DNA of 35,645 nt from Intoshia linei (taxonomy: Eukaryota > Animalia > Orthonectida), in contig LWCA01000264.1 in the NCBI GenBank assembly GCA_001642005.1, positions 1 through 35,645 of the forward strand, written 5' to 3'. The translations under genes were made by a program, and so were the position numbers. Position 1 is the stretch's first letter. Each line of letters starts with the position of its first letter. Below are positions 312 to 34,789 of this stretch, in pieces. Below the pieces are notes generated by a model, which was given only the letters and a program-made list of their open reading frames with translations, had not been told where the DNA came from and searched no databases.

Positions 312-3300
312 AGTATTGAAAAATTTACGAACCAATACAATGTTTTACAGCAGTCTTTACAAACAGTTAATTGTTTGACTAAAAACTCTGGTAATTGTTT
401 GATTTAAAAAACTATATAAACCCAGTTTCCCTACTTCAAAAGCGAATCTATCATATTCCTAAATACTCTTCGGGCCGAAAAATTTTTGTAAAATGGTGGC
501 CTGATTTTTTCAAATTGAGCATTTCAAAAAGTATATACTATACTTATACAGTCAAACCTCTATAATGTGAACCCTCTGTAAAGTGAACTTTTTTAAGAAT
601 GCACAACAAAAAATAATTTTGAGTAAATCAAAATGATTTTTTATAATTAAAGTGAAATTCTAATTGATACTATACACTTTTTATACAAAACGTACATTTT
701 TAATTTTTTCATTTATACAATATGAACAACGAAAATTTAAACAAAAAACAATAAACCTATGAAGAAAACTCAATCTTTTCTTAATTTTATGATCCAGAAC
801 TCTCTCCTGTTAACAATTTTGATGAAAAAAAATTGAAAACATTTTTTATGGTTAATAATCCAGAAAAATTATCTATTGTGTGGACTTTAATGCAGGAAAT
901 AAGGTCTAAAAAATCGATAATTATCTGAAATAACTATTTACTTTGGGTTAACTAAAGAAAAAAATAATAGATTATGATTAGAGTAGAAAAAAGCGAGTAA
1001 AGTTAGCAAAATGCTATTTTATTCAATAATAATTGACATCTGTTCGTTTTAATAAAAATGTTTTATGATTGCTCGGAATGTGAAACTGTGTGTTTTTCAT
1101 TTTATAGTGCTCCAAATTTTCAAAATATACTCGCTTTTTTGTGTCTACTATATAAGTTTATACCAAAAATGAAATTTATAATGCAATGAAAAATTAACAA
1201 ACATTTCAGTATATTTTAGTGAATCGTTTATAATATATTATGAAAAATTAATAAATAAACTTTAATTGTATGGTTACTATGTAACTATATTTTTTGTTCA
1301 TTATTTCTGCAATCATGAACACTCAAATACAGTCAATTATGTTCTATATTAACATGAAGGGACCAGATTTTGATCATGTTCATAATATACTGTAATATTA
1401 ACATATAGGAATGGCGATAATAATATAATTAACAGTTTCGAAATGTTTAATCAATGTTTGTTCAAACTAAATTGTCGTGTTCATATTAATCTGAGTTCAT
1501 ATTCTAGGATGTTCATATAGAACAGATACGACTGTAATTGAGTCCCAAATGTTCAATTAGTAAAGGGTTGACTGTAGTATATATTATTGAATATCATAAC
1601 TATTTTGTATGATAAATTTAAAATTTATAATGTCAAGTTAATGCCTTTCCAGGTGCAAGGTACAATGCCCTTGTGTACCTTGTACTCCTTTTAGTAAAAT
1701 TAACTTTTTATAAAAATTACAACTATTTTTCGAGAGAATATAGTATTATGTATTATTTTCAATAAAATTAGCAATATTTTTTAAATTTAGAAGTCATTTG
1801 CTTATATGCAATAAAAAGCGATGGAATTAAAATTATTTCGAGTTTACTAAATAACTTATCCATAAAAACAGACATGTTTATAGCTGTCGGAATTTTATGG
1901 AATCTATTAGGAAATGCAAATCTGAATGACGCACTAATCCATTTTAATACTCTAACTTGCATAAAGTAACAAACTTGTGTGCCTTAATCTAAATGATAAT
2001 ATTTAGTGAATTACAGACATCCTTTATGAATCAATTGTATTTATTTCACAGCCAAAGTGAGCGTGAATTGAGGAATGATATTTTATCAATAATTACAATC
2101 ATTAGCAAATTCAAATTAAAAAATAGAATTGTTGATACTGGGCTTTTAGAAAAGCTTTGCCTCGTCGCTTCTTTTGAAGATAGTATATTTTCATTTATTA
2201 TAATTATACATATAATAATATATGTATATAATGTAATAATAATAATTTTTAATAATGAATATCAAAATATTTGAATTTAATTTTAAAACATAGACAATAC
2301 AAAACACCCGTTAACCGACCGACTGAACTTAAAGAACAATTCTCAAGATTTTGAAATGCGTCGGTTAATTTTGTGTATTATTTGCAATCTTGCATCGGAT
2401 ACATCGGCTCAATCTGTAATTTTAGTAACTTAAAATAACATAAATATAACAGTACGGTACTTGATAAATGTTAAATTAAGTCATTACTTACGTCATTATA
2501 ACTTTTTTACTTATTTATTACTTATTATAAATACAAATATAATAATATTGAACTTTTATTTACATTTTGTTAATATTTTTATTTAGGTAATATCAAATAG
2601 TGGAATGATTAAATCATTATTACATTACTTTACTAATCCAACGACTATAAAAGACAATAAAATATCAACCCATTCATTAAATACTTGGAGTGATTCAATG
2701 TACGAGGAAATACAATTACAATCTTTAAATACCATTGCTCTCTTATCAAATAATGTCACATTCGCTCAAAAATTTATTGACAATAATATTACTACAATGT
2801 TGATGATTTTCCTCAATTGGTGCACCACACAGGGTTTTTTTTAAATTATCTTTAAGATTTTAAGATATAAAAATTACATATATAAATTCATAATATAATG
2901 CTATTAAATCTAATTTAAATTATAGATGGATGCAAGAGCTTTGGGAATGATTTTCATGCAAAAGGAGCCAAGAATACAAATTTGGCGCACATAAAACAAG
3001 CCTTACAAATTATCAGAAACATTATAATTAGTAGTCAAAATTTTGGCTTAATATTTTGCGATGAAATTTGTGATCAAGGCTTAATACCCATTTTAATAGG
3101 TAATGGTGTATTAAATGTTTAATTTGATGTAAATTTTAATACGTTTCAATTAGATTATTTAAATAAGCAACAAACTGATAAATTAGAAACATCATTACAA
3201 ATAGAAATCAAATACGATATTTTGCTAATTTTATCAATCGTATGTCAAGATAATAGCAATAATAAGGTATAAAATTCACATTTATGTTTATTTTTTTCAT

Positions 3301-6300
3301 TTCATTATTTAGATAATGTTTGGCAATGCTGGATGTGATATTGTTATACATAATATGCAACTTGACGAACAAAAATTGTATAGTGGTTTGGGGTATTATA
3401 AACTACTTATTGCTACAATTGGAGCTTTATGGTTTTTTATTGAAAATATAATCATTTTACATTTCATTTCCAGGTCTTGTGTAATAAATTGTTATGGTAA
3501 TGAAAGTTATTTCATCGAAAGAGGTGGAGCAAGAATTATGATGAATTTATTGGAGGTAAAAATTTGTCGATTTATTTGATTGCATTTATAAAACTTTAGA
3601 AAATTGATAAATCGCTTCATAATATTATACTGGGTTGCCTAACGGATTTATGCAACAATCCTCGCGTTTTTACGCATTTATTGAGTTGGAAAGGAAAAAA
3701 CCGTATAACTGCGGCACATCTTTTTTGTCAGCTGTGGCGACAAGAAGAAACGGTTATGCAAGTTATACGTGATGAAAATGGAAAAATTAGTGGTTTACTT
3801 ATGTTTTCTTTAACTTCTTAAACTGACGCTTTGATGGTTAAAAAAACATTTGAGCCTTTTCAATAATATCAATAATAATATATTGTTACTAGGTTGACTG
3901 TTATGTACTACGTAAAACAGCACCTAGCTGTGCCGAGGGACATTTTTTGAATTCAGAATTAGAATTTTAAATTTAAAAATTGCGTAGCAATGAAAAAAAT
4001 TCCGAAGGAATAAATGATATAGATTTTCACCCATATTTTTTTATTGGAAATGTGTAGACGTTCAATACACATTTTTTTTAAAATTGTAGGATCAATATTT
4101 ACATTTTCAATTTTTATTTTAATTGATTTATTGAAAAATATTGATTGATAATACATTAAAAATTATTTTTCACCGGGAATGCGAAAATTTTTGGGGTTAA
4201 ATTATTTCACATTTTTTGTTTTAATAAAATATTTCAAAAAAAATATATATCAATACTAAAATACTTTTTCGACCGTGAAGGCGTCACTTATTCAGATTGA
4301 AATTTTTTGTGTGTTAACAAGATTAAAAAAAGGGTAATTTGGGGTTTTGGCCTTGAAGATATATTTTTTTTAAATTTAAATTTATGATTATATGTATGAT
4401 TTTAAAATCTGTATCAGAGTGTATATTTTTTTAAATTCTAGAACTCATAATATTTTCAAAAAAAGAAAAATTGGGCTTTTTGACCCGTAAAATGTCAGTT
4501 TGGGAGGTCGAAATTTATTTTGCTAACATCCGGAAAAAAATGTAATTGAAAGGTGGATTTTATAAAATTCTAAGACTGGTAGTTATTGAAATAAACGGTA
4601 ACACACACAGACAGTATATTATATAAGTAAGGATTATTATTGTCGAAATTCTAAAAATTCTCCAGGGCGTAACAACTTTTTTTCTGACTCCAGAAATGAA
4701 AATGGAGCAATCATCATTTAGTGTGAAATGACCGGTTTCAAGTAAAAAATAATGCTACCCTTGATATGAAAAATTTGACAATAAAATAATTATAAATATT
4801 AATCAATACAAAATTAGATTGTGTACAACCAATAATTGGAAAATACCAAGTAAATTCTGAAATTGTTTCTTTGCAGTCAAATAAAAAATCAAATTCTATT
4901 ATTGACGTTTCTGATAACATTAGATCAAAAATCTATGCATTTTTCTCAAGAGTTGGTATACTACCATAATTATTTTATTTTCATACATTTTATGTAATTT
5001 TAGGATATCAAAATTTGTTTGGATTGACCATGACTGATCGAATGACTTTAGAAATTATTAAAAATTATTTAGATTTTAAGGTACATTGCAAATACACACT
5101 GTGTATTACACTGTATGATATTAAATATTTTTTATAGAAAGCAGAAGTTTTAGAGGAAGTTGAAATTGAAATATGCAGAGAAGAACATTTAGAAATTGTT
5201 GAAGAACCGGATAGAGAAATATTGGAAGCAATGAAATTAATTTCTATAAATAAAACTGAAAAAATTATGCAAAATCAAAGTATCATTCTAAAAACCAATC
5301 ATCAACAAGAATTGAACCAAGAAACTGTTTTATACCAAAAGGTAATATTATATCAGTATATTGTATTTGGCAATCTGATTTACGAGGAACGTGGTTCATG
5401 ACAAAATTTATTGGCCACCATAATTTAAGTTAGGATCAGATCTCAATATATACTACCGATACTGCCTTCGTGGCCTCGACCAAATTTTTTTTGTGTGTAT
5501 TCACTGGATATAACTGTAATCAACTGTAATTTTTTTTAAATTCTAGGACTATTTTCATTTGTTAAAAAAAGAGAAAGCTGGGGCCTTGATCATGAAAATA
5601 CACTATTTGAAGTTGCCATTGTTTATAATGGTTATGATTTTAAAAACTATCCAAGAATTTATCCTAACTTATATAATATGCTGTCTGTGTGTGTGACTTT
5701 ATTGAAATAACTACCACTCTTAGAATTTTTTAAAGACCACATTTCAATTACAGTTTTTTCCGGGATGTATAATAAGATCAATTTCAACCTCCCAATTTCA
5801 CAGCTTACGGGTCAAAAACTCCAGTTGTCCCTATTTTTGAAAATCAAACGAGTTGGAGAATTTAAAAAAATATATACGTTGATACGGATTTTGAAATCAT
5901 AAACATACCCATAAATTTAAATGTAAAAAAATTATATCTTCAGGGCCAAAACCAAAAATTACCCTTTTTCTTTTAGTGTAAACAGCCCTAGAATTTCAAA
6001 AAATTTACAGGTGGTACAGTTGTATCCTTTTAACACACACAAAAAATTTCAATCCAAATAAGTGATGACTTCACGGTCAAAAAAGTATTTTACTATTCAT
6101 ATATTTTTTTTCCGGAATATTTTATTAAAAAAAAAATGTAAAATAATTAATGATTCGAAAATTAAATAAAAAGATTATTCTGATAGAGCTTATTCCAGTT
6201 GATATAAATACAAAATTTAAATCCCAGAAATCTACGAATTCCCGGTGAAAAATAATTTTTAATATATTATCAACCAATATTTTTCAAATATTTCGAATTA

Positions 6301-12200: not shown

Positions 12201-12323
12201 AAATTGAATAATTAAATTTACATAATTTAATAATAAATATTATGATTATATAATTGAATATCTTTCATTTTGATCGGGTATCAATTATGCGGCCCGTAAT
12301 GTAAAATGTAAACTTCCATTTGT

Positions 12324-12337
12324 GTTACCATGGAAAT
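12324..12337 (+). promoter_or_regulatory. Candidate RFX X-box upstream of CFAP57
   Basis: GTTACCATGGAAAT matches the X-box consensus GTTNCCATGGNAAC except for the last base. It lies about 350 bp before the ATG of a ciliary gene. Confidence 0.55.
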
Positions 12338-12689
12338 TAAATAAACCCTGTACTGGTTTTGGCTCACTTTCAGGCAAATTTATGGTAAGTAAAAAACCGA
12401 TTCACGATTAAACTAATATAGACGCACTAATTTAATAATTTAAATTTATTATTTTGATTTTAAATTTAACTCGCGTGAAAATTCTAGAAAAAATGAAAGC
12501 ATCAAAAATATTGACCACAAAACTAAATAAATAATAAAAATATCAACATTTTAATTGTTTTAATTAAAAGAAACTGATTATGAAAAAGATTATTGTCACG
12601 GTTTTTCTGTTGTAGTAGCAATAATGTATGTCCGTTAAAACCAAGTTACTCTAAACAAATATTTTAGAAAAACATATTAATTAATACTA

Positions 12690-15600
12690 ATGTCGATGGC
12701 TATATCCACAATGTTCTACCAGTATGGTATACTGGGAGAATTGCAAGGAAATATATTTTTCATGGATGAGTCAACTGTGATATACCCGTCCGGCAAAAAT
12801 GTAATATTGCACAATATAGAAATGCACTCACAAAAATTTATACCATTGAATGAAAAAATGACTAGTATTAATGCAATGGCCATTAGTCCAAATAGACGTT
12901 ATTTGGCCGTATCAGAAACTTTACCAGATAGGCCAATTATATCAATTTTCGATTTACACACGTTAAGAAAGCGAAAAATATTATCCACTATTGAAATCAC
13001 TTCTAAAAATATAATCAGTATAGCTTTTTCCCCAGATTCTAAATACATACTTGCTCAAAGTGGTGAACCCGATTGGATGCTTGTCTATTGGATATGGGAA
13101 AAATCAAAAATATTAGCAACCATAAAATCTTGCACTCAACCAAATTGTTTTGTTAGTCAGGTACCAACACATTAAATTAATATTACCATTTTTTAATTAA
13201 AAAAATTAGATTAGTTTTAATCCACAAGATAATACTCAAGTGTGCATTATTGGTCAAGGCGTGTTTAAAATATATAGATATAATGAAAATGCTTTTAAAC
13301 AAGTCTCATTTCAAAAAATTGAAATTCAAGAATTTACATGTCATTCATGGTTGGCTGATGATCGACTCGCAATAGGAACGTTGACTGGAAAAATTTTAAT
13401 TTTTGACTGTGGTGAGTTAAAAGTTGAATTGGATTGTACAACTATGAGCGAATTGGAAGAGTAAAAAATTTTTAATGTTTTTAAAATGATTGTTAGGAAA
13501 CAAGCAAAATTATTAGATACTTTTGCTCTAGGTACCGGTCAAATCAATTTTATTATGGCGTACGGTAAATCACTTATGGTTTCTTGTGGGAATGGACTTA
13601 TTCAATACTTTGAAAAAAGTGAAATAAAAGATGGTATCAATTATAGACGAGGCAGGCAGTACATTGTAATTTTATTCATTTCAATTAAAAATTTTTTGAG
13701 ATGATAAATACCCTCGTGGTTATGACGTAACGTTCAGAGCCGAAACTACTAAGCTTGAGGTCATCCAAAAATTCAAATTGTCCCATTTTTTTTGCATACC
13801 ATGCATCGTGTCGTATGGCCCCTAGCTTCCTAGGCTCTTGGCTGAGGGTTTTAATTTTAATATACCAAATATTTATGATATTCAATAATATATTATTTTT
13901 CAATACTCAATTTGGAAAAATGAGACCCAAGTTTACCAAACTTTTGTCGAGATCGCAAATAGAGGTATCAGGTATGATAGATTTTCCACTGATAACAAAT
14001 ACGAATCTATTTATATTTATGATTATCGATATTATACTATTGCAAATAATATTTTTAAGATACCGAAAGACACTACAAACTATGATTCATCATCTAATTT
14101 ACGACATAATATCAATTCCATTGGGCTCAGTCCTCAAGAAAGTTTATTTGTTTGTTCAACAGACACGAAACAAATTTTTACAGCTCAATTCAGTACGACA
14201 GATATTGCGAAGGTACATTGTATTTTTGTTATTCTATAAGTTTATAACAGCCAGCCACATTGTGGCTGTTACCCAATTAATATAATATATAAATCATAAA
14301 GTTGTTGCAATTATATGCGAGAAAATAAAATGTATAAAAAATCGTCGAAGCTTTTATATAATTTAGTCATGCACCTTTCATATTTAGCATTTTAAACTTT
14401 TAGATGGAGCAATGTCATGTGTCATATCTCTCTGAACAATTCCATTCAGCAATGGTTACTGGACTAGATATGTGTATTAGAAAGCCCATGATAGCGACAT
14501 GTTCCACAGATAGATCGATTCATATATGGAACTTTGAAACATGGTATACTTTTTTTATATCCGTATACAAAATTAATTAATGTACATAAAATTGAAATTA
14601 AATCCAAAATTCAAATAAAATAAATTTAAACTTAAATTAAATTTGAAAATCAATAGTTACTAAAAGTTTTAAACTATTAAATTTTTAAAAGATCAAATTT
14701 TAATTTTATATATTAAAAAATTGCTTTTTGAATTAATTGTAAAAGAGTAAAATATTCACTAATATACGTTTTTTCATAATGAAAATATCAATTACTTGGT
14801 TGAATAAACTGTGATGAAATAAACTATTTTTTAAAATCTATACTATTGAATTTTAATTAAAATTTCAAAATATTGGGCTATGAAATGGTAATTTACGTTT
14901 TTGATCGTAAATATGCACATTTCTGATATTAAAAATTGTGGTAAGACGTTCAATAAAAAAACTGTCTTAGTATTTGAGTCCTTTCAAGTTATAAGTCTTT
15001 AATTGTTTTAAATAACTGCTTATATATATATTATGTATATATTATTATGCTATAACATTGAATTAAGGTATTACGTCAATGAAATAAATTTGTCGTGATA
15101 TCATGTATACATTCCAGATTGCTTTTTTAACAGTGAAGACGTCCATTTCAGATATTTGAATCTCATAAAAATGGGATGAAAAATGAAAAAGTTATTATTA
15201 TAGAATAATACCATGCTTAGTTTTCACGTTACATTTCTTTAAATCATTTTAAAAAATAAAATTATGGTCAAATGAGACTATACTATGATTTTTATCACAT
15301 GTTGAAAGCCAATGTCGGTTCTTTTTTATATTTTGGTAAGAGCTACTTCGTTAATATGCATAGTATGTTGGGTTTTTAGTTGATAATTATAATTATAGGG
15401 AAAATAATTAAAATAATAGAACCACATAAGTTTTAAATTAAACACGTTTTTAGGTTGCGACGTTGTGAATTATACATCTCTAATCATACTTTTAGCTGTT
15501 TGGAACATTTTAAAAGCTTTGCGGAAGAAGCATTTAGCATTGCCATTCATCCAAGTGGGTTATACATCTGTGTTGGATTCAGTGATAAGTTACGATTGAT

Positions 15601-18600: not shown

Positions 18601-20724
18601 AGAGAAGGAAGGAAAATTAAAAAAGAAAAAGAAATACCGTATGCGGAAGAAATTTTAATAACAAAATCAGATTTACAAGAAAAGGTAAATTTAATAATAG
18701 TACTTGATAATCATTTTAGAATACTTTAATGTGTGAATTAAAAGTACGAGTAGAAGAAATGAAAATGGAAAATGAATATCAAATTAGATTGAAAGATATG
18801 AGTCATAATGAAAAAATGCAAGAATTGACAGACAAATTTATAATGGAGATGGAATCTCTCAAAACCAAAAACCAGGTTAAATTATATTATATAACGATTT
18901 TTATTTCAACAGGTCTTGAAAGGCGACAAAGATAAACAAGAACTGACACACACCGAAACAATAAACGAACTTGTAGAAAAAAATACTAAAGAATTTCATG
19001 AATTGGGTATTTTTAAACATGATTTCATTAGAATTATGATAATTGAACATTTAAATGATGTATCTTTAATTTAGAAACTGCAAACAATCAAAAGTTAATG
19101 CTGGAATATGAAAAATTACAAGAGTTGCAATCCAAGTCACAAAGAATGCAAGAAGAATATGAATGGCAGCTTAATGAAGTAGAAAACAGTCGAAAAGCTG
19201 AAATTGAGAAATTTACTCAATTTTATGAATCCAAAGTGAAAGAAAAAACGGTACAGCTGGATATGGCACACGACGAAGCAAAGCAAAAAAGTTTAGAATA
19301 CGAAGAAACAAAAAAACAAATTGAAGAAGATGCTGACCATGAATGCATAGATTTAAAAAATCGATATGAACGAAGATTAAGAGAAGAAAAAGAAGCCAAT
19401 GTTAAATTGAAAGGAGAATTTAGCATTATCAAAAAAAATGTAATTATAATTGAAAATGTATAGATTGACCAATTTAGTCATTAAGTCTACAAAAAGCCAT
19501 TGATGACCATAAATCTGAAATTAAAAATTACATGAAGGACATTAACAAACTTAATATAAACATTAAGAATCTAGAAAAAGATATTTCAGGCTTAAAAAAA
19601 GAAGTTGCAGAAAGAGATGAAACTATACAAGACAAAGTAATACATTAATTAATTAAAATGTCAAGATATTTACATTTAAACCAGGAAAAAAGAATTTATG
19701 ATTTGAAAAAGAAAAATCAAGAACTCGAAAAATTCAAATTTGTATTGGATTACAAAATAAAGGAATTGAAAAAACAAATTGAACCTAGAGAAAATGATAT
19801 AAAGGAAATGAAGGAACAAATTCAAGAGGTAAACAAATGATTACATTAGATTTTACAATAATAATTGAACATTTTAAGATGGAAAGTGAACTAGAAAGAT
19901 TTAGTAAACAAAATGAATCGTTAATCATGCAAAATGAAGCAAGTCGGGAAAAGTTGTCTGCAAATGAAAAAGAAATTCGCAATGAACGCCAAAAAGTTTA
20001 TTATAAAAAAATAAAAATATTTATTTATTTCAATTTTTTAGATACGTGACGCTCAATTGGTCGTAAAAAGATTTAGAACAGATTTGCATAATTGTGTCGG
20101 ATATATACAATATCCTCAATTATTGAAAGACGCCGTTAGAGCAATGAACACTAAATATCAAAGTCAATCTGAGAATCAATCAGCCGCTATTGATGGCGAC
20201 ATACAAAAAGAATATGCCAGACAACATGAACATTTAGGTTTTAATATTATCCATTGTGATTTATAATAAAAATTAGAACACAGTGTGACTTCAGTGCGTA
20301 AAAAATTGAAAAAAGTGACGGCCATGCATAAATTAGACAATGTACGCATAATGCAAGAAAATGTTAGCCTTATTCGAGAAATTAACGAATTGCGCAAAGA
20401 ATTAAAGGTAAATCTGAACATTAAATGTATATTGCTAGATTTCACGTATAAGAGTGCACGACCTTGAAGCGGCTTTAGGGTTACATAGAAAGGCTAATCG
20501 GCAAAATGCAAACGAGATTTTAGCTCAACTAACTAAATCTAATAAAAATGCAATTCTCAAGTATTTTAATTTTTTAAATAAACGCAATTTTAAAATTCAG
20601 ACACAAATTACAAGAAAAAAAAAATTTGATTGAAGAACAAAAAGAACACATTGAAAGACTTTCTAAAATAAACCAAGATAACGAAGAAAAAATTAAAAAC
20701 AATGTAATTGTAAACAGTTCATAA
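12690..20724 (+). CDS. CFAP57: Cilia- and flagella-associated protein 57 (WDR65); WD40 repeats plus long coiled coil, 19 exons
   Basis: Exons 12690-13160, 13210-13460, 13497-13665, 14060-14212, 14404-14543, 15496-15661, 16993-17319, 17381-17554, 18523-18684, 18720-18875, 18913-19006, 19075-19439, 19478-19636, 19685-19828, 19879-19995, 20042-20237, 20277-20407, 20439-20560, 20601-20724. Motifs [85 protein letters not shown] and [17 protein letters not shown]. Confidence 0.97.
15962..16904. mobile_element. MITE-like element with long imperfect terminal inverted repeats
   Basis: Left end TACACTAGGGGTGGACAAAATTT...GTACCCCCTACCACCCGATAA. Right end (reverse complement) TATACTGGGGGTGTGAATTTT...GTATACCCACGTACGATAA. 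Confidence 0.55.
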
Positions 20725-20762
20725 TAGTATCAAATTTAATCAATTTGTATATTAAACATAAA

Positions 20763-23700
20763 TCAAGTTAATAATTTGTTTGCTTTCGTATAAAGAGAAT
20801 CAACAACCTCGTTGAATCGATTAATTATGGTTAGGCAAGTTTCATATTCAGAATCCTTACTGTCTTTGTCAATAATTTCCAATATCCCAACCTTTTGATC
20901 AATTATTCCTATTTAAACAAAAATTAATGCACGAATGATGATATATAAAAGGGTAATGCCAAAATTACCATCAAGTTTCTTGTCCAAAATCATCTTTGAC
21001 AAGTGACGTTCAATGTCCTTCTATTTTAATTTTAGAATAAACAAAATAATAAATTACAGTAGGTAGATTAATCAATCCAGCAATATGAGAAATCTAAATT
21101 TAATTCATTCACCCCTTGATAATAAAAATAATAAACCTGAACAAAGGAAAATGGTTCCACCAGTTTAATCAAATTTTGTTCCATCATATGAGTATACAAA
21201 ACTTTTAAATGTGTTTTTATCACCACATCTTGGTCCAATTCTTCCTTGTGGTCGTCAAGCACCTAAAATTTACAAAATAATACACATTTTAATAAGATAA
21301 CAGAGATAATGATGGATAAGAAAAATAATATTCCGTCCACAATGTTTAATATTATTTACATTTATATCACTCAAAATTATAACCTTTTGAAAATCAAAAA
21401 GAGATCGATTTTTAGCAGCTTGGGCAATTCTTTTCATGGCTTCAATATGTTTTCCAGCATATTTTAATGCCATTTTCCCTGATATAATCGACATAACTTC
21501 CTTAGAGCTAAAATTTGAACAATAAATTAAAAAGGCATTTAATAAATCAAGCGAATAATTATCTATCTAATTCTGACATTCAAAACGGGTAGTTGCGAAT
21601 TTTTTCAGTCATTTTTATTTTTAACTTTTTTAATTAAATTATTAAAAAAGAAAATCCCATCATAAATTAAAAATGTTGTAATAAAGAAATTAATGAAGAT
21701 TATGAAATATCATGTGGTCGATTTTAAAGTTCAAAAAATGTGTTAATACCTCTATGGATCGGTGTTCAATGTTATCGTTTACTTATTTAAAATTGAATAT
21801 CCATGTGTTACCGTATATTTAAAAATGTATCAGTCGTAGAATTTCAAAAAGCCAATTTCGAATAATTTTTTGCAGTGGACATTAATATCTATTTTTCAGT
21901 TTCCGAATTTGAGTCCTGCAAGGTCATAAACCAAATGTACCCTTTTGTTTAAAAATAAAATTAACCGAAAAATGTAATAAAACATAAATTCTGGGATGCA
22001 TTTTAAAATCATTAACATTATCGTAAACTCAGCCTCAGTAAACGCACAAATTCATAGTCAAACCACTAATTACCCTTCGTTTTCAAAATGAAACATGTGC
22101 TAAAATTTTATAAAACATAAATTGTGGGATAGTTTTTAAAATTGTAAAAATTATCATAAATGGCAACCTCAAAAAAGTTTAAAATTTATAAAAAAATACA
22201 AAATAGAAATTCAATCTGGCAAAGTGACGCTTTCACAGTCAAAAAAAAAACTTTAGTATTAATTTTTTTATTAATTAACAAAAAATTTAAAATGATTAAC
22301 GGTCCTACAATTAAAAAAAGATTATTATCATACAGCTTATTGTCATATATATTATATCCAATTGACATAAATATAGAATTTCAACAAGATACATATAGTA
22401 ATTGTGATTTCCCGGGAAATGACAAAAATCAAAAACCGGAAAATTTAATGTTTAATTTCCTAAGATAAATAAAAATTTTTATTCATATATAATATAGAAG
22501 CATTAAAAAAAATTTTAGAGACCTTAATTAAGTTTAGAAACAAAAAGAAATTTAATTAATGAAATAACACGAATCTAGATTGAAATTTACAAATTTAATT
22601 AGAAAAAAATTTATTTATTTTAGATTATTGAAAAAGTGTCTCAAAACACACATAATATTGATAGATTCGTCTTTTAAACGCGTTCTACGTTTTGTAATGA
22701 AAAAAAACGCAGTAGAAAAATTTATAGTTATTAAAATTTATTTTTAAAATTTTTACTTAGGTTGAACGGTTATAGGGGCTTCCTTTAATTTTAACAATCT
22801 TGATGATAGCGTTCCAATTCGTAATAACTCATAATATTTTTCAAAATAATATTGGGAAAAAAGGATAATTCCCTTAAGCGTTAGTAATTTGTGGTTGGAA
22901 TAAGAGGTTTTTAAAAAAAGTATTGGAAACAGAATATTTTTCCATTAAAGGCTGGAAAATTATATTTTTTATTTGTGGTTTGATAAAGTGCATTTTTTTC
23001 ATAAGATTTCGTAATCTCGGATTTTTGAAAAAAATATCCGTGTAAGTCAATTTTTCCATGAGGGCTTGAAATGGTATTTTTGATTAAATTTTATTAGTAG
23101 TGGGATTTTTGAAATGGTATATTTTATATATTATAATTTATAATAATCATATTTTCATGGTAATAACAAACATAAATCAAATACAGGTATGTCTCAATTT
23201 TTTTTCGGGAAATCCCGGGAAATCGTAAAAATCTCGGGAATTTTTATTCTTTATTTTATTTAATTTTAAATTTTATTTATATCTAAATTTTCAGATTAAT
23301 TATAAGGAATTCAGCCCTCATTAAAATCATAAATAAATGAGCTAGAACTGAATTTAAAAAAACAAAATGTACCCAAAAATATAGTAAACACCATAGCTAT
23401 ATAAACCAACTCAAATCCTATAATACTTTAAAAAAATTGTTTCATATCTACCTTAACATTTCTATATTAATTTAAATAATTGCATTTAAAGGATGGTAAA
23501 TATACAAAAATATTAACCTTGAAAATTCTGCCTTCGGTAGAATTATGTAATGTTTGTACAAACTACATAACATAATAGCTAGTATCTTATAAAAAAATAT
23601 ACCTTTCACTCATAATCTTCGACATCAACATATACTTTAAGCATGTCATGGCATTTAAGTGGTTAATGGAATCGTATCCTTCAAAAGCTTCATAAAAATA

Positions 23701-25218
23701 AGAATACGCAGTTTTAAAGTCATTTTCCTCGGTAGAATGCAAAATTCCTACATATTAAAAATATAAAATTAATTGAAAACCTGATTGCATATCCAAAGAA
23801 GCTTGTAGTCGTGGAGGGCAATATATACCATTTGCTGTTGTTCTACCGCTTGTTAGAGCACCTCTAAATTCATTAAAAATTTAATTAAAGTTCATAAAAT
23901 TATATAATACATATCGTTACAAATATTCAAATAAAGACAATGGAAGAACATTTCCTTATTTTAACTGTCCTATAAATTCACTCACGTGAAATAAAAAGGA
24001 ATTGGGAACAGTTTGACACGAGTAAAATGTTTCATTATTTGAAAAAAAATCTAGATAATTATACACCTATATAAATTAGCGGCATCAAATAAGGCTATAG
24101 ATTTCAAATGTTAAAAACGTACAATTGAAAATGAAATAAACAGTCAAATCTACAAAACGGAAATTTATAAACAAAATAAAAACCTGGATTTGAGAAAATT
24201 TCCCAAATGATAATAAATTTTACTCAGAGACAATTGAACTTGCACCAGAAGCGGCTTGTCGTCCAATTTTTTCAATTCAACTAATAATTTATCACCTAAA
24301 TTGATAGAAAATCAAAGTTACATTAAAAATTACCCAATTCAATTCCATTTTTAAATTGCTTCAAATTCAGATACAGTTCAATCAACTTTGACTAAGAAAA
24401 TTAAAAACGTCATTTTATATAAATTACTTGCAAAGTATTTCGCAAAAAAAAACGTTTTTCATTTTCAGCCCATTTAATACATTCGAGACAAATATCCACC
24501 TAATGTAATGATAAACATAACTGATATTAGTCTAAAATATAGTCATTTAACCAGGACCGTGGAGAGAGGCCTTATATATTAATTTAATAATATGTAACGT
24601 TGGAAATTTTTTTCAAAATATTATTATTAAAAAAAAAGTTTTTATTACATCATAATTAAAATACGGAGTGACAAATATAATATAAAAATTAATAATAATT
24701 ACTTCATATCCAAATTTTTCAGTAATATCCAATAAATCATTCAATAGACAACGTATCAATTTAGCTGCTTTGGGTTTACTAATTTCTTTGAGAAAAGGCC
24801 GTATAAATTTAATTAAATTTGCCAAAGCTATTAAAATGAATTAATTTTGTAACCAAAATGAAAATTAAAAATTAAAAATAAAAAAATTATAATTGCAAAC
24901 ATAACATAACTATGACAAGATTCACTAAAATTATCGCTAAAATTGTACAACTAAAATCTACAGTAGTTACCTTATCGGCTCCATAACGCGGTAATGATTA
25001 CAATAAACGTAAAAAGATTACACTCAGTATCTTGGCGTTTTGAATAAAGTTTTGAAAGTTTAAGAATATACTTTTCTTTTTGTTTGGCAGATAAGTCTGA
25101 TTTATTTGTTGTTTCAGAGGTGTAAACTATTTACCAAATTAAAATAAAACTTTTTCAAAATACCATTATTCTTTAAAAAGTCAAGCTCTTCATCGGTAAC
25201 GGTAATGATATCCAACAT
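20763..25218 (-). CDS. PSMD11: 26S proteasome non-ATPase regulatory subunit 11 (Rpn6), 13 exons
   Basis: Exons 25218-25164, 25126-25022, 24827-24703, 24499-24428, 24391-24334, 24295-24184, 23863-23781, 23747-23603, 21507-21384, 21262-21137, 21093-21058, 21020-20969, 20908-20763. Motifs [81 protein letters not shown] and VVDSLYTKA. Confidence 0.97.
21775..22395 (+). mobile_element. Helitron-like element, copy D (3' end not seen)
   Basis: Begins A|TCGTTTACTTATTTAAAATT and shares internal blocks with copies B, C and 34815-35005 (ATTAACGGT.CTACAATTAAAAAAA; AAGTGACGCTTTCACAGTCAAAAA). Confidence 0.68.
22396..23245. repeat. Probable MITE with clustered CCCGGGAAAT subterminal motifs
   Basis: TTTCCCGGGAAAT near 22408 and TTCGGGAAATCCCGGGAAATC...TCTCGGGAATT at 23204-23242. 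True termini are not resolved. Confidence 0.4.
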
Positions 25219-25992: not shown

Positions 25993-28519
25993 ATGACAAA
26001 ATATGAAAAAGAATCTCAAATGTCTGATAATAAAATAATTTGTAATGGTGAATACGACGAATCACATGGAGTCGAATCGAATGCAGAGGTAATTTGACTT
26101 TGCTTTGAATATAATTTAATTTTAGCCAAACGAGCCGATTCGTTTCTTCAATTCTGATGAATACGACGAGTCACATTCTGTAAAAACTGAAAGTGAGCAA
26201 GTTAAAATATTAAAAATGAAACGTTTGTTTTTTGGGTATACTTTTATAATATGTTTAGGCAAAAAGAAGTCGGAATTTGTGAGAGCTGGTGATATTCAAG
26301 GAAATAGAGGCACCGATACATTGGAAAGTTTAGTAACGTACATCAATGGAGGTGATTTAGAAGTAGTTCCAACAACAAAAGTGAACAAAAAGAAGAAGAA
26401 AAGTAAAAATAAAAAAATAAAAAGCTCAGTTACTGCACCTGTTCTAAATCAAGATAAATCCATCGAGAAAGTAAGTAATTTTACTGAATTGAATACTCAA
26501 CCACAAGTTGCGGTTGAAATTAAAGAAAATGTAATAAATATCACTGAGTCTACTAAAAATGATGAATCTGAATGGAGTACTTGTTTTAACAAGAAAAAAC
26601 GAAACGAAAAATTTGAAAAATCCAATATCGGTATTGATCAAAGAAAAAAGACGAATGTGCTTGGAAAACCGGTAAAAAAACAAAAAATACAAGTGCATCA
26701 AGATAAAAAGATATTCAAATATCAAACTAAAAAAATTGACCAAAAACCCACCGTCAAGTCAAGTCAAATAAATGGGTTTAAAAATAAATTACCAAAAAAT
26801 AAACCTCTATCTCAACCTATACCAAAATCAAAATCTACCGATGAACATAAATCTCAGAATCTAAGCCTTCCAGAATCTGATGAATACAATGTAACTGTTT
26901 TTGACGTGGAAAAGTACAAAAGAGATATTGAAAAATCCTCGAGTGTGCAAATTAAAATTATGGAAAATGATTATAAACGTGAAAAAAACTGTGAAAGGTT
27001 CAACAGTAATCATTATTCAAACATTGATGCTACTGATTATACTAATCAAAGTAATTGCAATAATTATGCTCCAGAATATCAATATTTTTATGCACCTCCA
27101 AATCTATACGATCAAAATATGAACATCTGCCCGGTTTATTATCCTTTCCAGAATCAATGGTATCCTCCCACCAACCAAGTTTATATGCCAGCATTTGGTT
27201 ATTACGATCCGATGTGTGGTGGGTATGTTTCGTGTAATTTTTTCAATAATTTAAATATTTAATCGATCAGCTCAGTTTAAAAATAATACTCTGCTAAATA
27301 TAAACAATTCTTCAATATCATTGTATTTAAATGTCATGAATAACAATGGCAATGAGTTTATGATATAATTATTCATAATTAAGTCCTTGTTATTTATCAG
27401 TCTAGAAGTGTCGAATTAATTTAAAAGTTTAAATACAATTATATTTTTATGTTCTTGATCTGAAGTAGGGATCGGTAACCTTTTATTCGATTTGGGCCAT
27501 ATTTTAAAGTACAAAAATCTTTCTGGTAACTAGTATAAAAAAATTTTTTTCGATACTACTAAATTTTTAATCAAATTAAGACATCTTAATCTTGCGTCTT
27601 ACCCCACTTTATTTTCTACTGTATTTATAAAAAACTTTATTTGCTCTTTATGTATTGTAGTTCTCTACGGTGTTTTTTTAATAACCTTTTCAATTTTTTT
27701 ATAGAATATCCCCCTAAGCCCAATATGTATCGTTCTACTTAACTCACTTTCTTCAAAATTCAGTTTTTATAGTTTTTGATTGTACATTAAATATTTCCGA
27801 TGAATAACGTCTGGCCATTCTTAGTCTGAAAGTCGCTGGTATATTTATCTTGTATTTTATATTCTATGCTAAATTTTTCAGATATTTTTGTTAAAGTCAT
27901 AAATACCAATAATTAAGAATTTTCCTAGGGTCACTGGTAAGTTTAAAGTATCTTTCGTTCGGCCGAACACCACTCTTAAAAATTATGATAAATATCCTGT
28001 TGCGAATTTAAATTTTAAAAATATAATTTAGATCAAAATATGAATCCTGCCTATATAGATCCAAAATTTTCACAACAAATCATCATGTCTAACGGACAAC
28101 CTGTTGAACAATTCAACAGTATTCCTATTAATCAACCTCTCGCTTTCAACGATGCCAAAACTCAAAATCATCTGAACGATAAAGTGGAACCAGACTCTCA
28201 TCCCAAAATTACAGCTACTGTTACCGAAAATATAGTCAATCAAATTGACAATGTCAATAATAAAATTGAAGAAATGAAAATTAACACCAAAACTGAAATA
28301 AATCACAATGAATCCAAAGTAAAATCTGTTAAAATTATGGCAAATGACGTTATGATAAATCTTTCAAAATCAAATGAAATTTGTAGTGAATTTTACCATA
28401 GCCACGTTCCATACTGCTCTAGTAAATTATATAATAGCAATGCAATCAAATGGAAATCTCTAAAATCCCAAATAAGCGATTCAGGAAATGTAGTTAAATA
28501 CGATAAAAACCAAATGTAA
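25993..28519 (+). CDS. Uncharacterised, largely low-complexity protein (Lys-rich middle, Tyr/Pro/Asn-rich segment)
   Basis: Proposed exons 25993-26088, 26126-26222, 26259-27233 and 28032-28519 join the 348-aa and 159-aa ORFs in frame. The long open frames in very AT-rich DNA support coding. Boundaries of introns 2 and 3 are not homology-anchored. Confidence 0.7.
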
Positions 28520-28633
28520 ATAAAATGTGTTCAACTACACAGTGTTAATAAAATTGTAAATCCTTACGATATATTTATGTTAATTATAGTTTGATTAAAT
28601 AAACAATTGATAAAAGTACTTTTTAATATCGAC

Positions 28634-31600
28634 ATGTTGGCGATGAAGTATCTCGTGTTTGTTATTTTTATGGTTGCGCTAAAATTGCTCAAAGTCAAAA
28701 ATCGATATTTGTTGGCTTTAATTTGTAGTCTTTTAACTACAGGTTTATTTTTATTTTTTTTACTAATTTTAAATTAGACGGTATAATTAACTTTCAAAAA
28801 TCTATTTTCAAACCGCATATTGGCAATTACAGTTTGCCGGTTCCTTCCTATCTCAAATTGGAAAGTTTTTACATAAAAACTGCAGACAATGAAAATTTAC
28901 ACACCTTTTTCATACCAAGTGATGTATCTAGATCGGAAAAGGAAAATAACAGCCCTACGTTGGTGTATCTTAGTGGAAATGCTGGTAGCATTAGATCCAA
29001 GTAATTGTCGTATTGTTTAAAAACAACTTTTATAGCATTTGGACAACTGAAATTTTGTATAAACTTAAAATATTTAATATTTTTATGATTGACTATCGTG
29101 GATTTGGGTTGAGTACTGGTGAACCATCCGAGAAAGGTAAAATTAATAATTATAAAGTAATTTCAATAAAATTTATTTTTTTCTTTGTTTACATTGCAAT
29201 AAATTGGTTAAATTAGGTTATGAAGGATTTTCACTACAATAATGTATCTAATAAATTTATAAAATATAATTTTTATCGTCAATATACATTAGTGTTTTAT
29301 AACTGTGGGGTAAGCCCACAAGTTGATCTGAATGAAATTTATTGGAGTTGTAAAAACTAGGTTAATTTTGTACAATACTAGCTTGATTGTTGTATACTTG
29401 GTACAAATAGCAGCTAGTTATGTCAAGGGCAACATTTTTATTTTTTAATTGATTTTAAGTTTTTCAAGATGTGATTTATGATAATACTCAAGATTTTAAA
29501 GACTATCCAAAATTTATGATTTATAAAATGCTGTGACTTCATTTTTAAAAAAAAACCTAATTTGGGGGTTTGACGGTAAAAGTGAAGATGGTTGATATTT
29601 ACGAGAATAGTAATGGTATTAAAACTTCTCTCAAAATGTATGTTATTAAAAATTCTAGGATTGATTTGATTATTTATTAACAAAACAAACAATTTGGATT
29701 TTGATCCTAAGGGAATTAATTTCTGAAAATAAATTAACTATTATAAATTGGGTGTTTTTAAATCTAGAACTTAATTTTATAATTAAACGGTAGTGGACAG
29801 ACATAAAATTATATATAAATAAATAATTCCCATATGTCATACGGTATGACTCATACCTAATATTACAAAAATATATTATAGTTTTTATAGTTGTACTGAC
29901 CACTAGTTCGACCCTACATGTCACCCATTGTACCATAAAAAATATTCCTTGATATAAAACGTTTAAAAATTTCAATAATTAAAATAAATTATAGTTTTAC
30001 AATAAAGCATCTCAAATCAATATTATCAATAACGTCACATTTTTTAATAATTATAAAGGAAACGGTAAATATACAAAATATACATTTGACTTTTAGGTAT
30101 GATTGAAGATTTAAAGGCAGCACTTTTGTATTTACAAAAATACGATATTTTGAAAAACAAAAAAGTGGTTATTATGGCTCATTCATTAGGTGGCGCTGTC
30201 TTAATCAGCGCATTAAATTCAAATTTAAAATGCTGTGATAAAAACATTGTTTTAATCACAATAATAAATACATTCTCATCTCTTAGAAACATTGCTATCA
30301 GAATTTATGGAGATTTTTTGCGACTTATCAATTATTTGCCTAATGTGATGCTATTAAACAAGGTATCAAAAACTAATTATAAACAAAATAAATTAATAAA
30401 ATTCAAACCTTCCATATAGAACATTCCATAAAATATACAATGTACTTACATGGACATTTCAGAATTATTTTAAATTTTAGCCCTACAGACTGTGGTTTCC
30501 AAGTTATATACCTTCGTAATCCACTTTTCATCAAAATCATTGTGTAAATAACACAATTTTTCGTTCGTACATGTCACCTCAACACGATCGGATGCAGAAC
30601 TCTAATGTGTACCCAGCAAAAAATTGAAAACGAGCTATAACATTTCACAGTTGGTCAGTTATATCAGTTTTTTTTTACCCAAACAACTTTTTTTCTTAAA
30701 TATGGACCATTTATTTGCAAATCATATACTATAGCAGCGATTCCCGGTTGGGGTCCCAGAGCCCCATGGGGCTTAAAACTATATGCCTGGGTGACTGTGA
30801 GATTCAAATAAAATATAGACAAATTTTTATCAATTTTTGTTTATTTTTAATACTCATAGAGCAGTGGCTCCCAAAGTGGTCAACAGGAAATTCTAGGTGG
30901 TCACAAGAAAAATTTTATTATTATTAGTGAACGTAAATATCATTTTATAAAAATGAAGATAAAATTTACTGAATAACGTGATAATTTTCACGTGGGTTAA
31001 ATTTAATCTATGTAACGACTTGACTTAGTTCGATAGTCGTTCCCAGAACCGAACCTAGCAAGCTCGTGGCTACTCCTAAAATGAAAAATAGCTCCTTAAA
31101 AAAATTTGTAAACGAATTATAATGTCATATAACCCTATCCACCTCTTAAGACTCTTGAGTTGACATTTTAAATTTAACTCACAAATTAATTGATTTCAAA
31201 AAAAATTTTAATGCTCAATTAAATAAATTAAAGCCCCATTTGATCCATTGAGATCCATCGGTAGAAGGGTCTCGGATACGGTAGGTTCGGCACTGGTAGT
31301 TCGCCATAATTATGTTCGAAATGAATAATTTTTTTAATTACGCTATTGAAGCTACCATGTCAAAATTAATGTTACATTTTTGATTTAAGGAGGAATAATA
31401 AAAAAATATAAATATTACCTTAGTGACGTGTTCAGGATTAAGGGATTTAAGGAATTTATCTTAAAGCCTAGACGACTACATTATTATTTTAAAAAATCCC
31501 ACCGTTAATAAGATACCATAGGCATAAGTATAAAATACCATTTTAAACCGTCAGAAAAAATCGACTTTTACCTATATTTATTGAAAAAACCACTTAAATA

Positions 31601-33320
31601 TCTTCTTTGTCAATATTTTTTTGAAAAACACATTTTACCAAATCTCATGAGAAAAAGCTTAATTTTTTAATAAAGGTTTTATATTTCATGTTTCCTTTGG
31701 GATGCAAAAAAATAAAATGGGAATATTAACACTATTTCAATCGGGAACCACTTGTACTATTGTAATGATTTGTAGTAGGCACTATGGAGTCCTGATTATT
31801 CGAAAATTTGAAAAACCGGTTATTGAATAATTCCGGTTATTTGAACAACGATTATCCGATTAATCAAAATTTAAAATTTTTAACATAAAATTCAATCATA
31901 ATCAAAAGAGAATTTAATCTTGTTTTTACATCCAAAATTAATTTCAATTTTTTTTTATGTATCAAATAACATAGATTTGTAGACAGTAATTTTTTACATA
32001 TGATTTGCGAAATAATCTCACAATTTTTCGAATTTTTGATAAAGTTTCATAAACTAGAGAATGTATGATATTTTTGTCACTATTTTCTTCAGATGTATCA
32101 TTAAATGAATATTCACTATTAGAATTAGAAAATAATGATTGATTGATTGCGGTTATTCAATATGATACATAACACACAACTAAGTGTATCGTATGGGAAA
32201 AACAAGTTTGATGTAAACAAGGTACTATCCTTCATAATTTCATCATTACACTGAATTCATCAGTTGTGGCACAAACGATTTCTTTATTTATGTTAAATCC
32301 AAATTCTAACATTTTTTCCTTAACAATTTGTACACATTTCTCTGATTTGGCCGATCCAGAAATTCTGATCAAACCTGTATTATATATTTTAAGTCTTGTA
32401 TGAATATTTATATTCATGTAATTTCGATTATTAATTCCAGTATATTCATCAAGAGTGAGACTGAACATGGTTTTATTTTGTAAATCTTGAAAAATTAGAC
32501 TATTTGATATACTTATGAAATTTTTGAAAATCCGATTATTGTAAGCGATTAATCGAATATCATTCCCTAGTAGGCACTCAACACATGAGATTTTAACTAT
32601 TTTAATATTTTCTTGTTCGCTAAAATGATTTAATTACTTCCAACTGCGGCCTAAGGAAAGAAGTTTAAGAAACACTGGTATAGAGTCTGAGAATTACCAC
32701 TACTACAAATTATTAATTTATCTAATTTTTAGTTTGACACTGTTAATATCATTGAAAACATTAAAATTCCAATATTATTTTGTTCCAGTATTAATGATGA
32801 TATTGTACCTCATGATATGATGACTACATTATACCAAGTAATTTTTTATTATTATTTTTATATATTGATAATTTGGTTATGGAATGGTCCCTAAATTCTG
32901 TAGTTTACATTGTAGACTGTACGACGTACAGTATTACGAGCCGAAGTATAATTCAAAATTTTATTTAATTTATTAATGAGCTTAAATAATATGGCATAAG
33001 TTATATTTATTAACATGTAAAAAATGTTTTAATATTAAAAATTGATCTATACTCTATGAAGTTCCCGTATTTTTTTGTTTGTCAGATACGGGCCATACTC
33101 CCGTGCAATCTTAAAATTTGAATAAAATGACAAAACTCTACATTGTACACACACAATGTAGTATAGCTTTATATCAGTGTATAATATACAATATATACTT
33201 TAGATTTCTAAAAGCAAAGAAAAAAAAATAATAAAGTATGAAAATTCAAACCATGTAAATGTATTAACGGAACCAAGCTTTCTGAGTGATGTAATACAGT
33301 TTTACAACAGAGTAAAGTAA
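28634..33320 (+). CDS. ABHD13: ABHD13-like alpha/beta hydrolase with N-terminal hydrophobic anchor, 6 exons
   Basis: Exons 28634-28742, 28778-29000, 29036-29136, 30097-30362, 32733-32837, 33204-33320. Motifs PTLVYLSGNAG, IDYRGFGLSTGEPSEKG, AHSLGGAV, NTFSSL, PILFCSSINDDIVP and NSNH give a Ser-Asp-His triad. Subfamily assignment (ABHD13 vs ABHD12) is from memory. Confidence 0.8.
29378..29825 (-). mobile_element. Helitron-like element, copy F (internally deleted)
   Basis: The minus-strand 3' end ...CCCTTGACATAACTAGCTGCTATTTGTACCAAGTATACAACAATCAAGCTAG|T matches the family terminus. The 5' region reads TTATATATAATTTTATGTCTGTCC. Confidence 0.65.
31044..31295. mobile_element. 252-bp MITE with 8-bp target duplication (hAT-like)
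   Basis: CAGAACCGAACCTA ... TAGGTTCGGCACTG inverted ends; flanks GTCGTTCC / GTAGTTCG. A related end (AGTGCCGAACATACGGTA) occurs at about 17635. Confidence 0.65.
31783..32569 (-). mobile_element. Internally deleted hAT transposon with transposase remnant
   Basis: Perfect 8-bp duplication GTAGGCAC (31775-31782 and 32570-32577), subterminal CGATTAATC/CGATTA repeats, and minus-strand FSLTLDEYT...NINIH...GLIRISGS...IVCATTD followed by CFSHTIHL (hAT CxxH motif). Confidence 0.88.
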
Positions 33321-33395
33321 TTAACGGGGAAAAATTGCAACAAGGAATAATACGAAATAATTTAATACAACATATTGTAAAAATAAAAATAAACA

Positions 33396-34789
33396 TCATG
33401 TCCAAGGGTAAAATAATGAAAACAGTACAGTTCCAATGATATGATAGGTTAAAAAATACAAGCCAATTATTTTACGACAAAAATGTGATTTTTCGTACAA
33501 AATGGCACAATACAAGTAAACCAGTGGACAAGCAGAGCAAATCATTCTTGTAATAATCTAAATGTAAAATTAAATATATAAGAAACAATATAATACTATA
33601 ACAATACAAGAAACATAATATAAACCTGAATATGTGCAAATAAAGCAATGAAAATGGCAATAAAAACAATATGTGTAATGTGAACAAGATGACATTTTGT
33701 TATAAAATCAATAGTTTTAGTTTTGAAGCATTGCTTTTGTTTCGTTTTCAGAAACGTATAATGAATCCAATAGTACACTATTATTGTCAATAAAATATAC
33801 ATGGGTGCTGACAACAAAAAGTTTCCAATTTGAGTAAGTTTATACATGTAAAGAAATCCTACATTCCAGTATTTAGTTTGCAATAATTTATAAAAGTTGA
33901 TGTAATTGTTGCAATTAATAATAGAATTCAACTGTGGTCTACACGCCCATAAACGAATAAAATTAAAGTAGATACAGAGAGGCAAAATCATTAAAAATAA
34001 AAACAAAAAAATTAATAAAATAATTGTCAACATTTTTTTGATATCAACATGAAAAGCACAAGTCTGTAAACATTTGTGTATTTGTGATGTACGCATTTGA
34101 TAATGTACAGTGAATACTTTGAACAATGAAAAAAATAAAAATCCCAAATTTATCATTCCGTTTGATCGACATATTATACAAATTGACATGAATAATGCAA
34201 TAAAAATCAAATGTTTATATATTTGAAATTTAAAAGTCTTTTTTAAATTTTCAGGGTTTACTGATACAAAATTTTCAGTTACGCATTTTTCCAGTAAATG
34301 AATCTCATGTAGCAAATTTAAAACAGTATAAAAATATAGACTTTCAGAATAACATGCACTGAAGAATATACTTGCTGGATTGAAGCAAAACAAAAATGCA
34401 GCTTTGTATGCCAATTTTTCTAATTCGTTTTTTTCCAAATTCGTTTCATCCTTTAAAATGTTTCGAGTAAAAATGTATAAAAGTCTGGCAGAATACACAA
34501 AAATTATATTGTTGATTAATACTGCAGAAATAATTATCAAGTCTAAATTTGGCCATTTTAAGGGATTTAAAATAAATGAAGTATATCTAAAAATTAATGG
34601 AGCAAATGGATAAAATACAAAATGATAGTCAAAGGTGTATGAGTTTGTTGCAATGTAAATGAAATATTGCCCATCCCAATTGACATAACCTTTGAATAGA
34701 ATTTTCACTAAAAAGGATTCATTAAAATTGTAGTTTCCATATTTGAATGCGTCTGCATCATGAAATGGGAACGTATTGATTGAAATAAA
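33396..34789 (-). CDS. PIGV: GPI mannosyltransferase 2, 5'-partial
   Basis: Exons 34789-33626 and 33557-33396. Motifs WDGQYF, FYPFAP, FNPASIFFSACYSESL, RSNG, YWNVGFL, NFLL, HIQIITR and C-terminal PWT*. The short first coding exon was not found in the window. Confidence 0.95.

Follow-up and report, generated by a model that had tools for sequence, protein, structure and literature searches.

The window studied here is a stretch of 35,645 nucleotides (nt) that forms one entire contig (G000:C1938) of the genome assembly of the orthonectid Intoshia linei (41.6 Mb in 3520 contigs), and our subject is the 5' splice sites (donors) of its genes together with the U1 and U6 small nuclear RNAs (snRNAs) of the same genome. 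G+C content in the window is 26%, and the animal genes found there are intron-rich, with very short introns. They comprise a CFAP69-like gene (391..5347, + strand), a CFAP57-like gene with WD repeats followed by a coiled coil (12681..20724, +), PSMD11 (Rpn6) with 13 exons (20766..25218, −), an unnamed two-exon gene encoding 32 amino acids and then a 378-amino-acid open frame (25993..27262, +), an ABHD13-like gene (28743..32891, +), and a PIGV-like gene (33399..34789, −). From these we placed 47 introns (12, 18, 12, 1, 3, and 1, respectively), independently of an earlier reading of the same sequence, referred to below as the original prediction. The 46 donors with a placed acceptor give a median intron of 52 nt, 29 of them being ≤70 nt; about five introns per gene and a median intron length of 57 bp have been published for I. 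linei (PMC6543705). The donors of the window lack G at position +5 and, where the exon does not end in G, mostly begin with GTAAT, and the genome contains, beside three canonical U1 genes, a U1 paralogue with a 5' arm complementary to the donor hexamer that is most frequent here.

Introns were placed junction by junction. For each pair of neighboring exons, fixed by a six-residue translation anchor, a script enumerated all frame-compatible GT-AG pairs and returned intron length, A+T content, flanking peptides, and both splice-site contexts. Junctions of PSMD11, ABHD13, and PIGV were picked by protein continuity with the human orthologues, and those of CFAP57, CFAP69, and the gene at 25993-27262 by a TAG or CAG acceptor preceded by a T/A run, by intron A+T, and by an open frame being retained. 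This procedure was adopted because automatic intron calling is unreliable at this composition. Ab initio calling on ~120 kb with a dynamic-programming gene finder (codon, openness, and intron-composition scores) produced mostly false introns and shadow genes, and enumeration of pairs of open reading frames (ORFs) with composition and acceptor filters did the same in 26% G+C sequence, the numbers of both approaches being discarded. Pentamer enrichment at ORF ends showed no contrast, with a base rate of 9.5% for 'ORF-end-like' GT, and the hits of an exon-by-exon Pfam search, meant to support introns outside the window, were limited to a p450 exon, an RRM, and a UQCC domain, from which the junctions there could not be fixed. 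A few of the long introns may hide small exons. Across the window nearly all chosen acceptors are TAG, with fewer CAG and rare AAG, after a T/A run; in phase-0 introns the acceptor TAG doubles as the in-frame stop that opens the reading frame of the next exon.

The loss of +5 G from the donors of the window is confirmed. At +5, 26 of the 47 donors have T, 18 have A, 3 have C, and none has G, matching the 30, 19, 3, and 0 that the original prediction had counted among 52 introns. GTAAT is the commonest pentamer (18/47 here, 21/52 there) and GTAATT the top hexamer (11/47), and no donor has the U12-type sequence (A/G)UAUCCUU (0/47). GTAAT is concentrated in donors without G at −1, where it accounts for 11 of 16 vs 7 of the 31 with −1 G (Fisher p = 0.0038), as had been claimed from 15/20 vs 6/32. 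With only those junctions that have one sensible solution, the figures are 8/13 vs 3/25 (p = 0.0026). For GTAA, over all 47 donors, they are 13/16 vs 12/31 (p = 0.007).

The two kinds of donors are constrained very differently. When −1 is G there is little constraint over +3 to +6 (A 22 and T 9 at +3, A 14 and T 14 at +4, A 15 and T 14 at +5, A 9 and T 15 at +6), only +3 leaning to A and +5 standing at background. The 16 donors without −1 G have A at +3 in 15, A at +4 in 13, T at +5 in 12, and T at +6 in 10, with G at +5 in none, and their exon ends are A-rich (A at −1 in 11 and at −2 in 10). It is thus supported by the counts that GUAAU substitutes for GURAG in donors without −1 G. After GTAA in this class the next base is T in 11, A in 1, and C in 1. 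The excess of T over A was tested on two backgrounds, the local T/(T+A) of 0.61 (p = 0.02) and the ratio of GTAAT to GTAAA in the genome, 453:600 (p = 0.0007).

There is no sign that +5 G is being selected for. Intron interiors, taken from seventeen seed introns, contain A 0.42, T 0.43, C 0.08, and G 0.066, and the 0/47 G at +5, tested alone against the interior 6.6%, gives p = 0.04. Over +3 to +6 there is one G in 188 positions (p = 4e-5) vs 18 in 235 over +7 to +11. G at +3 to +6 therefore lies below the intronic background, which indicates that it is avoided, beyond being merely unselected. The sole GTAAG candidate seen at a plausible junction is CCAA/GTAAGTAT (L007:2891-2940, − strand; the slash marks the exon-intron border here and below), an unvalidated intron of ~50 nt near the U6 genes and one of three competing solutions there.

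Among the possible partners of these donors, a C-to-A change had been proposed for U6 by the original prediction. The two U6 genes found are identical (G000:C2452, 112.8 bits with Rfam), and both have a canonical ACAGAGA region, with the box AUACAGAGAAGAUUAGC equal to the Rfam consensus (letters given as AUACAGAGAAGAU and AUACAGAGAAG). As U6 is unchanged, the +5 pair with its ACAGAGA box has been given up. Loss of splicing proteins had been suggested for checking as well; METTL16-like, LUC7, and zf-U1 (U1C-type) domains were all detected in the genome at domain level, so that there is no sign of loss on the protein side, and a protein-level relaxation of donor proofreading is neither needed nor excluded.

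U1 proved to be a diverse family. Four U1 genes exceeded the Rfam threshold in the genome, three canonical and one with C4 changed to A, and a covariance model of our own, built from the first six hits, found 12 U1-like genes, all with E ≤ 1e-26. The canonical arm ACUUACCUGG (also written ACUUACCUG) is present in three genes (G000:C2786:21790, L029:1501-1512; C504:4674, L030; C1710:32127, L031), the C4-to-A arm AAUUACCU in one, AAUUUACUUUUGC in one, AAUUUACGACUGC with close relatives in six, and AAUAUACGACUGC in one. The eight variant genes beside C4-to-A have AAUUUAC or AAUAUAC arms; seven U1-like genes carry AAUUUACGAC-type or AAUAUACGAC arms, and the AAUUUACUUUU arm, all A/U, is the complement of AAAA/GUAAAUU. 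Since the canonical arm is kept in three genes, U1 has not been rewired as a whole, and an arm replacement throughout the genome of the Entamoeba type is not what these three genes with ACUUACCUGG display. The C-to-A change in U1 that had been predicted exists exactly as such in one gene that looks maintained. We considered the divergent copies as possible U11 genes and rejected this, as at E ≤ 0.01 they match no Rfam family other than U1, with no hit to U11.

All 12 genes retain the U1 fold (helix H and stem-loops 1-4) through compensatory changes: 89% of paired cells pair, against 34-47% in slid-register controls, and 20 of 38 pairs have changed on both sides. Six aligned genes have intact loops for U1-70K and U1A (GAUCA..AAG and AUUGCAC) and a readable Sm site, AAUUUAUG; the loops are changed in some class IV copies, and the Sm site is kept in most of the 12. 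Upstream, always equally far from the gene, 10 of the 12 have the motif (T/A)GAATA(A/T)ATTATG, which is degenerate at C3240:34803-34959 and absent at C2162:31321-31475, a copy that may be dead. Most of the genes also have a 3'-box-like A(A/T)AGA motif ~12 nt downstream. The canonical copies differ from each other at 35-36 positions overall and at 0-1 positions in the 5' arm, from which it follows that the arm is normally frozen.

Some of the U1-like genes are clustered, three of them at G000:C2162:31321-35153 (arms AAUUUACAAAUGC, AAUUUACUUUUGC, and AAUAUACGACUGC) and another three at G000:C3240:32710-53378. The canonical genes start with UUAC or UCAC, and the conserved start of U1 in other eukaryotes is AUAC. 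The A at position 3 is the only purine near the start that is common to all 12 genes, and for this reason the mature RNAs may begin there.

The C4-to-A gene (G000:C2786:17038-17196) scores 74.3 bits, above the Rfam gathering threshold, and is located 4.7 kb from a canonical copy. Its arm reads UCAAUUACCU-AAGC, that is, the predicted C4-to-A change plus the loss of G11. Compared with the nearest canonical copy it has 31 differences, a distance similar to that among the canonical copies themselves, keeps 37 of 38 pairs, and includes three double compensatory changes. The motifs that flank the canonical genes, one upstream and a 3'-box-like one downstream, recur beside it. Such a fold, compensatory changes, and flanking motifs are, as far as the sequence alone can tell, the marks of maintained genes. 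The AAUUAC arm is exactly complementary to GUAAUU, the top hexamer among the donors of the window, and no other of the 18 single-base changes possible in ACUUAC would yield such an arm. As a measure of pairing we counted consecutive pairs running through +1 and +2 in the 16 donors without −1 G. The canonical arm reaches at most 4, the C4-to-A arm forms 6 pairs on 7 of the 16, and the AAUUUACUUUU arm forms at least 6 on 8 of the 16, its U run pairing with the A-rich exon ends.

Taken together, these results point to a donor code that may have drifted toward A/T and split into two classes. About two thirds of the donors would consist of AG/GU followed by nearly any A/T-rich sequence, held mainly on the exon side by −1 G and −2 A with U1 C9, U10, and U5 loop 1. 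Donors without −1 G would need a strong intron side, with GUAAU(U) in place of the GURAG of other animals. The genome, having retained three canonical U1 genes, would have added paralogues with A/U-shifted arms, of which the C4-to-A paralogue may read GUAAUU donors and the all-A/U arm AAUUUACUUUU may assist donors whose exon ends in AA. If GU plus an A/T-rich sequence is nearly the whole signal, a second GU beside the donor may be selected against, which could also explain why G is avoided at +3 to +6. In its full form, the reading is that a panel of U1 arms (ACUUAC for AG/GU, AAUUAC for /GUAAUU, and AAUUUACUUUU for AAA/GUAAA) serves a split, A/T-shifted code with U6 fixed, as natural suppressor U1s that co-evolved with the drift in base composition, and we give it a probability of about 0.35. 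Its starting points, the donor statistics of the window, the snRNA sequences and folds, and the shared flanking motifs, are direct observations; beyond them it supposes that the variants are expressed, assembled into small nuclear ribonucleoproteins, and used on the donors of the window. For the narrower claim, that a variant U1 actually reads the GUAAUU donors, the chances seem to us nearly balanced, leaning slightly to the negative.

A simpler account is plain A/T drift with a relaxed donor and idle variants. Short introns would be defined by GU, by A at +3 (and at +4 in donors without −1 G), and by a U-rich start, the readers being canonical U1 along with U5, U6, and protein factors, for example TIA1/NAM8-like ones or LUC7; +5 would be unconstrained, its T coming from local U-richness, and the variant U1 genes would be minor or act in other roles. 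Much of what it appeals to also weighs against a variant U1 that reads the GUAAUU donors, as does the sample, 47 donors from a single window of 35.6 kb. Pooled over all donors, T at +5 (26/47, 55%) is not above T at +6, +7, and +8 (25, 26, and 28 of 47; 53%, 55%, and 60%), so that the original proposal of T as the compensatory base finds support only after GTAA in donors without −1 G, to which the excess of T over A is confined, and fails in the pooled sample. When GTAAW donors alone are compared, the two classes show no significant difference in their share of T and A (Fisher p = 0.15), and among unvalidated short introns outside the window A/GTAAA is about as frequent as GTAAT, which leaves the T-specificity suggestive and unsettled. 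The robust compensation sits at +3/+4, as the GTAA counts indicate, and A and T are nearly equal at +5 when −1 is G. Canonical U1, U6, and the LUC7 and zf-U1 domains are all retained, the C4-to-A variant is a single gene vs three canonical ones, few donors match the variant class with the most genes (AAUUUACGAC), and the 5' ends of these U1 RNAs are predictions. The main reason for caution comes from the variant U1s of humans, whose expression is <0.001% of that of canonical U1 and of which few show splicing activity (PMC10870369). On the other hand, drift alone does not account for 11 T vs 1 A after GTAA without −1 G, for a G content at +3 to +6 that is non-neutral, for variant genes kept by compensatory changes with promoter-like motifs retained, or for the fact that the one change observed, out of 18, is that which complements the top hexamer. 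We find plain drift plausible, although clearly below an even chance.

Two other explanations were weighed. With a signal so degenerate, a reader could have picked GTAAT-like sites, inflating GTAAT and hiding GTNNG; automatic placement without homology is indeed unreliable, a shortest-intron rule is wrong at about half of the PSMD11 junctions, and for about six junctions out of 47 more than one solution competes (2416 or 2425; 3100, 3106, 3108, or 3117; 15662 or 15707; 17555 or 17591; 19007 or 19060; 21383 or 21359), a weakness that the case for the variant U1 shares. Nevertheless, the two independent placements (52 and 47 introns) agree closely, both with G = 0, the association survives in the robust subset, no junction list of the window offers a plausible +5 G candidate, and PSMD11, where the orthologue guided the placement, by itself gives T at +5 for 10 donors out of 12 and GTAAT for all four without −1 G. 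An artefact of placement is accordingly improbable in our view. A rewired U6, in which C-to-A in ACAGAGA would restore a pair with +5 U, is refuted for the two genes found and has practically no weight left.

Donors of two types, AG//GUNNN on the one hand and NN//GURAG on the other, have been described, the latter explained by pairing with U6 ACAGA (PMC11732430). The architecture seen here resembles that one in that −1 G donors, about two thirds of the total and in the AG//GU class, tolerate almost any intron start, and the others need a strong intron side. It differs in the intron-side class, which is GUAAU(U) with +5 G in 0/16 and +5 U in 12/16, whereas the published class has a +5 G that pairs with U6 C42 and U1 C4. 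Since the U6 C opposite +5 is unchanged in I. linei, the published U6 ACAGA pairing cannot explain the GUAAU class. By analogy, the nearest precedent is the co-evolution of U1 and donors in protists, where Entamoeba combines an ACAAAC arm with GUUUGU donors, Mastigamoeba has ACGUAC, and in Physarum a modified U1 coexists with the standard one (bioRxiv 10.1101/2022.06.08.495308). In these cases, as in ours, an altered U1 arm pairs by Watson-Crick with a non-standard donor, and Physarum likewise keeps both types of arm. However, I. linei is an animal, its genes have about five introns each, the changed base of the arm is the one at position 4 (which pairs with +5) rather than those at positions 5 and 6, and at least four different arms coexist, the matching donor being one class among several and not a near-universal consensus.

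The human variant U1 (vU1) genes are U1 paralogues too, some with altered 5' arms (PMC3561869; PMC10870369). Like them, the altered-arm paralogues described here keep the fold and have flanks that look snRNA-type; unlike them, since vU1 arms do not track the donor consensus of their genome, the C4-to-A arm complements the commonest hexamer of the window. The variants of I. linei would also be natural counterparts of the laboratory suppressor U1s (Zhuang and Weiner 1986, via PMC11732430). As far as the account given there goes, the likeness is that one substituted base, at position 4 of U1, lets it pair again with a donor altered at +5, and the difference is that the suppressor was engineered and tested at the bench, whereas the C4-to-A gene is natural and known from its sequence. 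For orthonectids, we found nothing on donor sites or snRNA variants in the searchable literature.

In animals, +5 G and the recognition arm of U1 are among the most conserved parts of the splicing code. Reports of U1 and donors changing to match each other come, to our knowledge, from no more than a few protists so far. If several U1 arms truly serve different donor classes, this core recognition step could diversify by gene duplication under mutational pressure, and I. linei would offer a natural test of the shares of U1 and of U5/U6 in donor choice, a debated question. Gene prediction in such genomes would improve as well, as standard donor models penalize these sites. If the variants are idle, this would still be an animal in which +5 G is avoided and not just unneeded.

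The individual donors are given here as the first intron base, the −1 base, and the donor hexamer. In the CFAP69-like gene (from junction enumeration and the donor table) they are 391 G/GTAATT, 1966 A/GTAACA, 2183 A/GTATAT, 2416 T/GTAATT (or 2425 A/GTAACT), 2834 G/GTTTTT, 3100 G/GTAATG (or 3106, 3108, 3117), 3267 G/GTATAA, 3556 G/GTAAAA, 3793 G/GTTTAC, 4956 G/GTATAC, 5081 G/GTACAT, and 5342 G/GTAATA, the acceptors being uncertain for 391, 3793, and 5342. The CFAP57-like gene has 13161 G/GTACCA, 13461 A/GTAAAA, 13666 T/GTAATT, 14213 G/GTACAT, 14544 G/GTATAC, 15662 A/GTAATA, 17320 A/GTAATA, 17555 G/GTAATC, 18685 G/GTAAAT, 18876 G/GTTAAA, 19007 G/GTATTT, 19440 T/GTAATT, 19637 A/GTAATA, 19829 G/GTAAAC, 19996 A/GTTTAT, 20238 G/GTTTTA, 20408 G/GTAAAT, and 20561 A/GTATTT. 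Between 18685 and 20600 it contains eleven introns of 31-68 nt, most of them with a single sensible solution.

In PSMD11, placed by continuity with the human orthologue, the donors (window coordinate of the intron G, − strand) are 25163 G/GTATTT, 25021 T/GTAATC, 24702 A/GTAATT, 24427 A/GTAATT, 24333 G/GTAATT, 24183 G/GTTTTT, 23780 G/GTTTTC, 23602 G/GTATAT, 21383 G/GTTATA, 21136 G/GTTTAT, 21057 T/GTAATT, and 20968 G/GTAATT. The unnamed gene has 26089 G/GTAATT with an intron of 37 nt, and the PIGV-like gene has a placed donor at 33625 (G/GTTTAT) with its acceptor at 33558. Placed donors of the ABHD13-like gene are 29001 A/GTAATT, 29137 G/GTAAAA, and 30363 G/GTATCA; its motifs GNAG, DYRGFG, and HSLGGA match those of the family.

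Other elements in the window include a short, probably miniature inverted-repeat transposable element-like repeat, some copies of which are inverted (4160-4620, 5700-6060, 11049-11235, and 21899-22110, and also L026:960-1390). Its translations share 'ICVSEAEI..NDFKT..PRIYVL' and 'KNYIFRAKTKNYPF', with no obvious coding role. Some copies are intergenic and others sit in long introns, and most introns >900 nt are explained by them. Between the CFAP69-like and CFAP57-like genes there is a remnant of a Tc1/mariner-type transposase (7232-8290), broken across several frames, in which the open frame 8003-8152 contains '..PSKSPDLNPIENQWGILARSVY..'. Two open frames run antisense within long introns: one of 102 codons with an ATG start (22160-22468, + strand) in the 2.1-kb PSMD11 intron (23602-21508), and one of 133 codons (32232-32633, − strand) in the 2.4-kb ABHD13 intron (30363-32732), the latter of which may be a nested gene.

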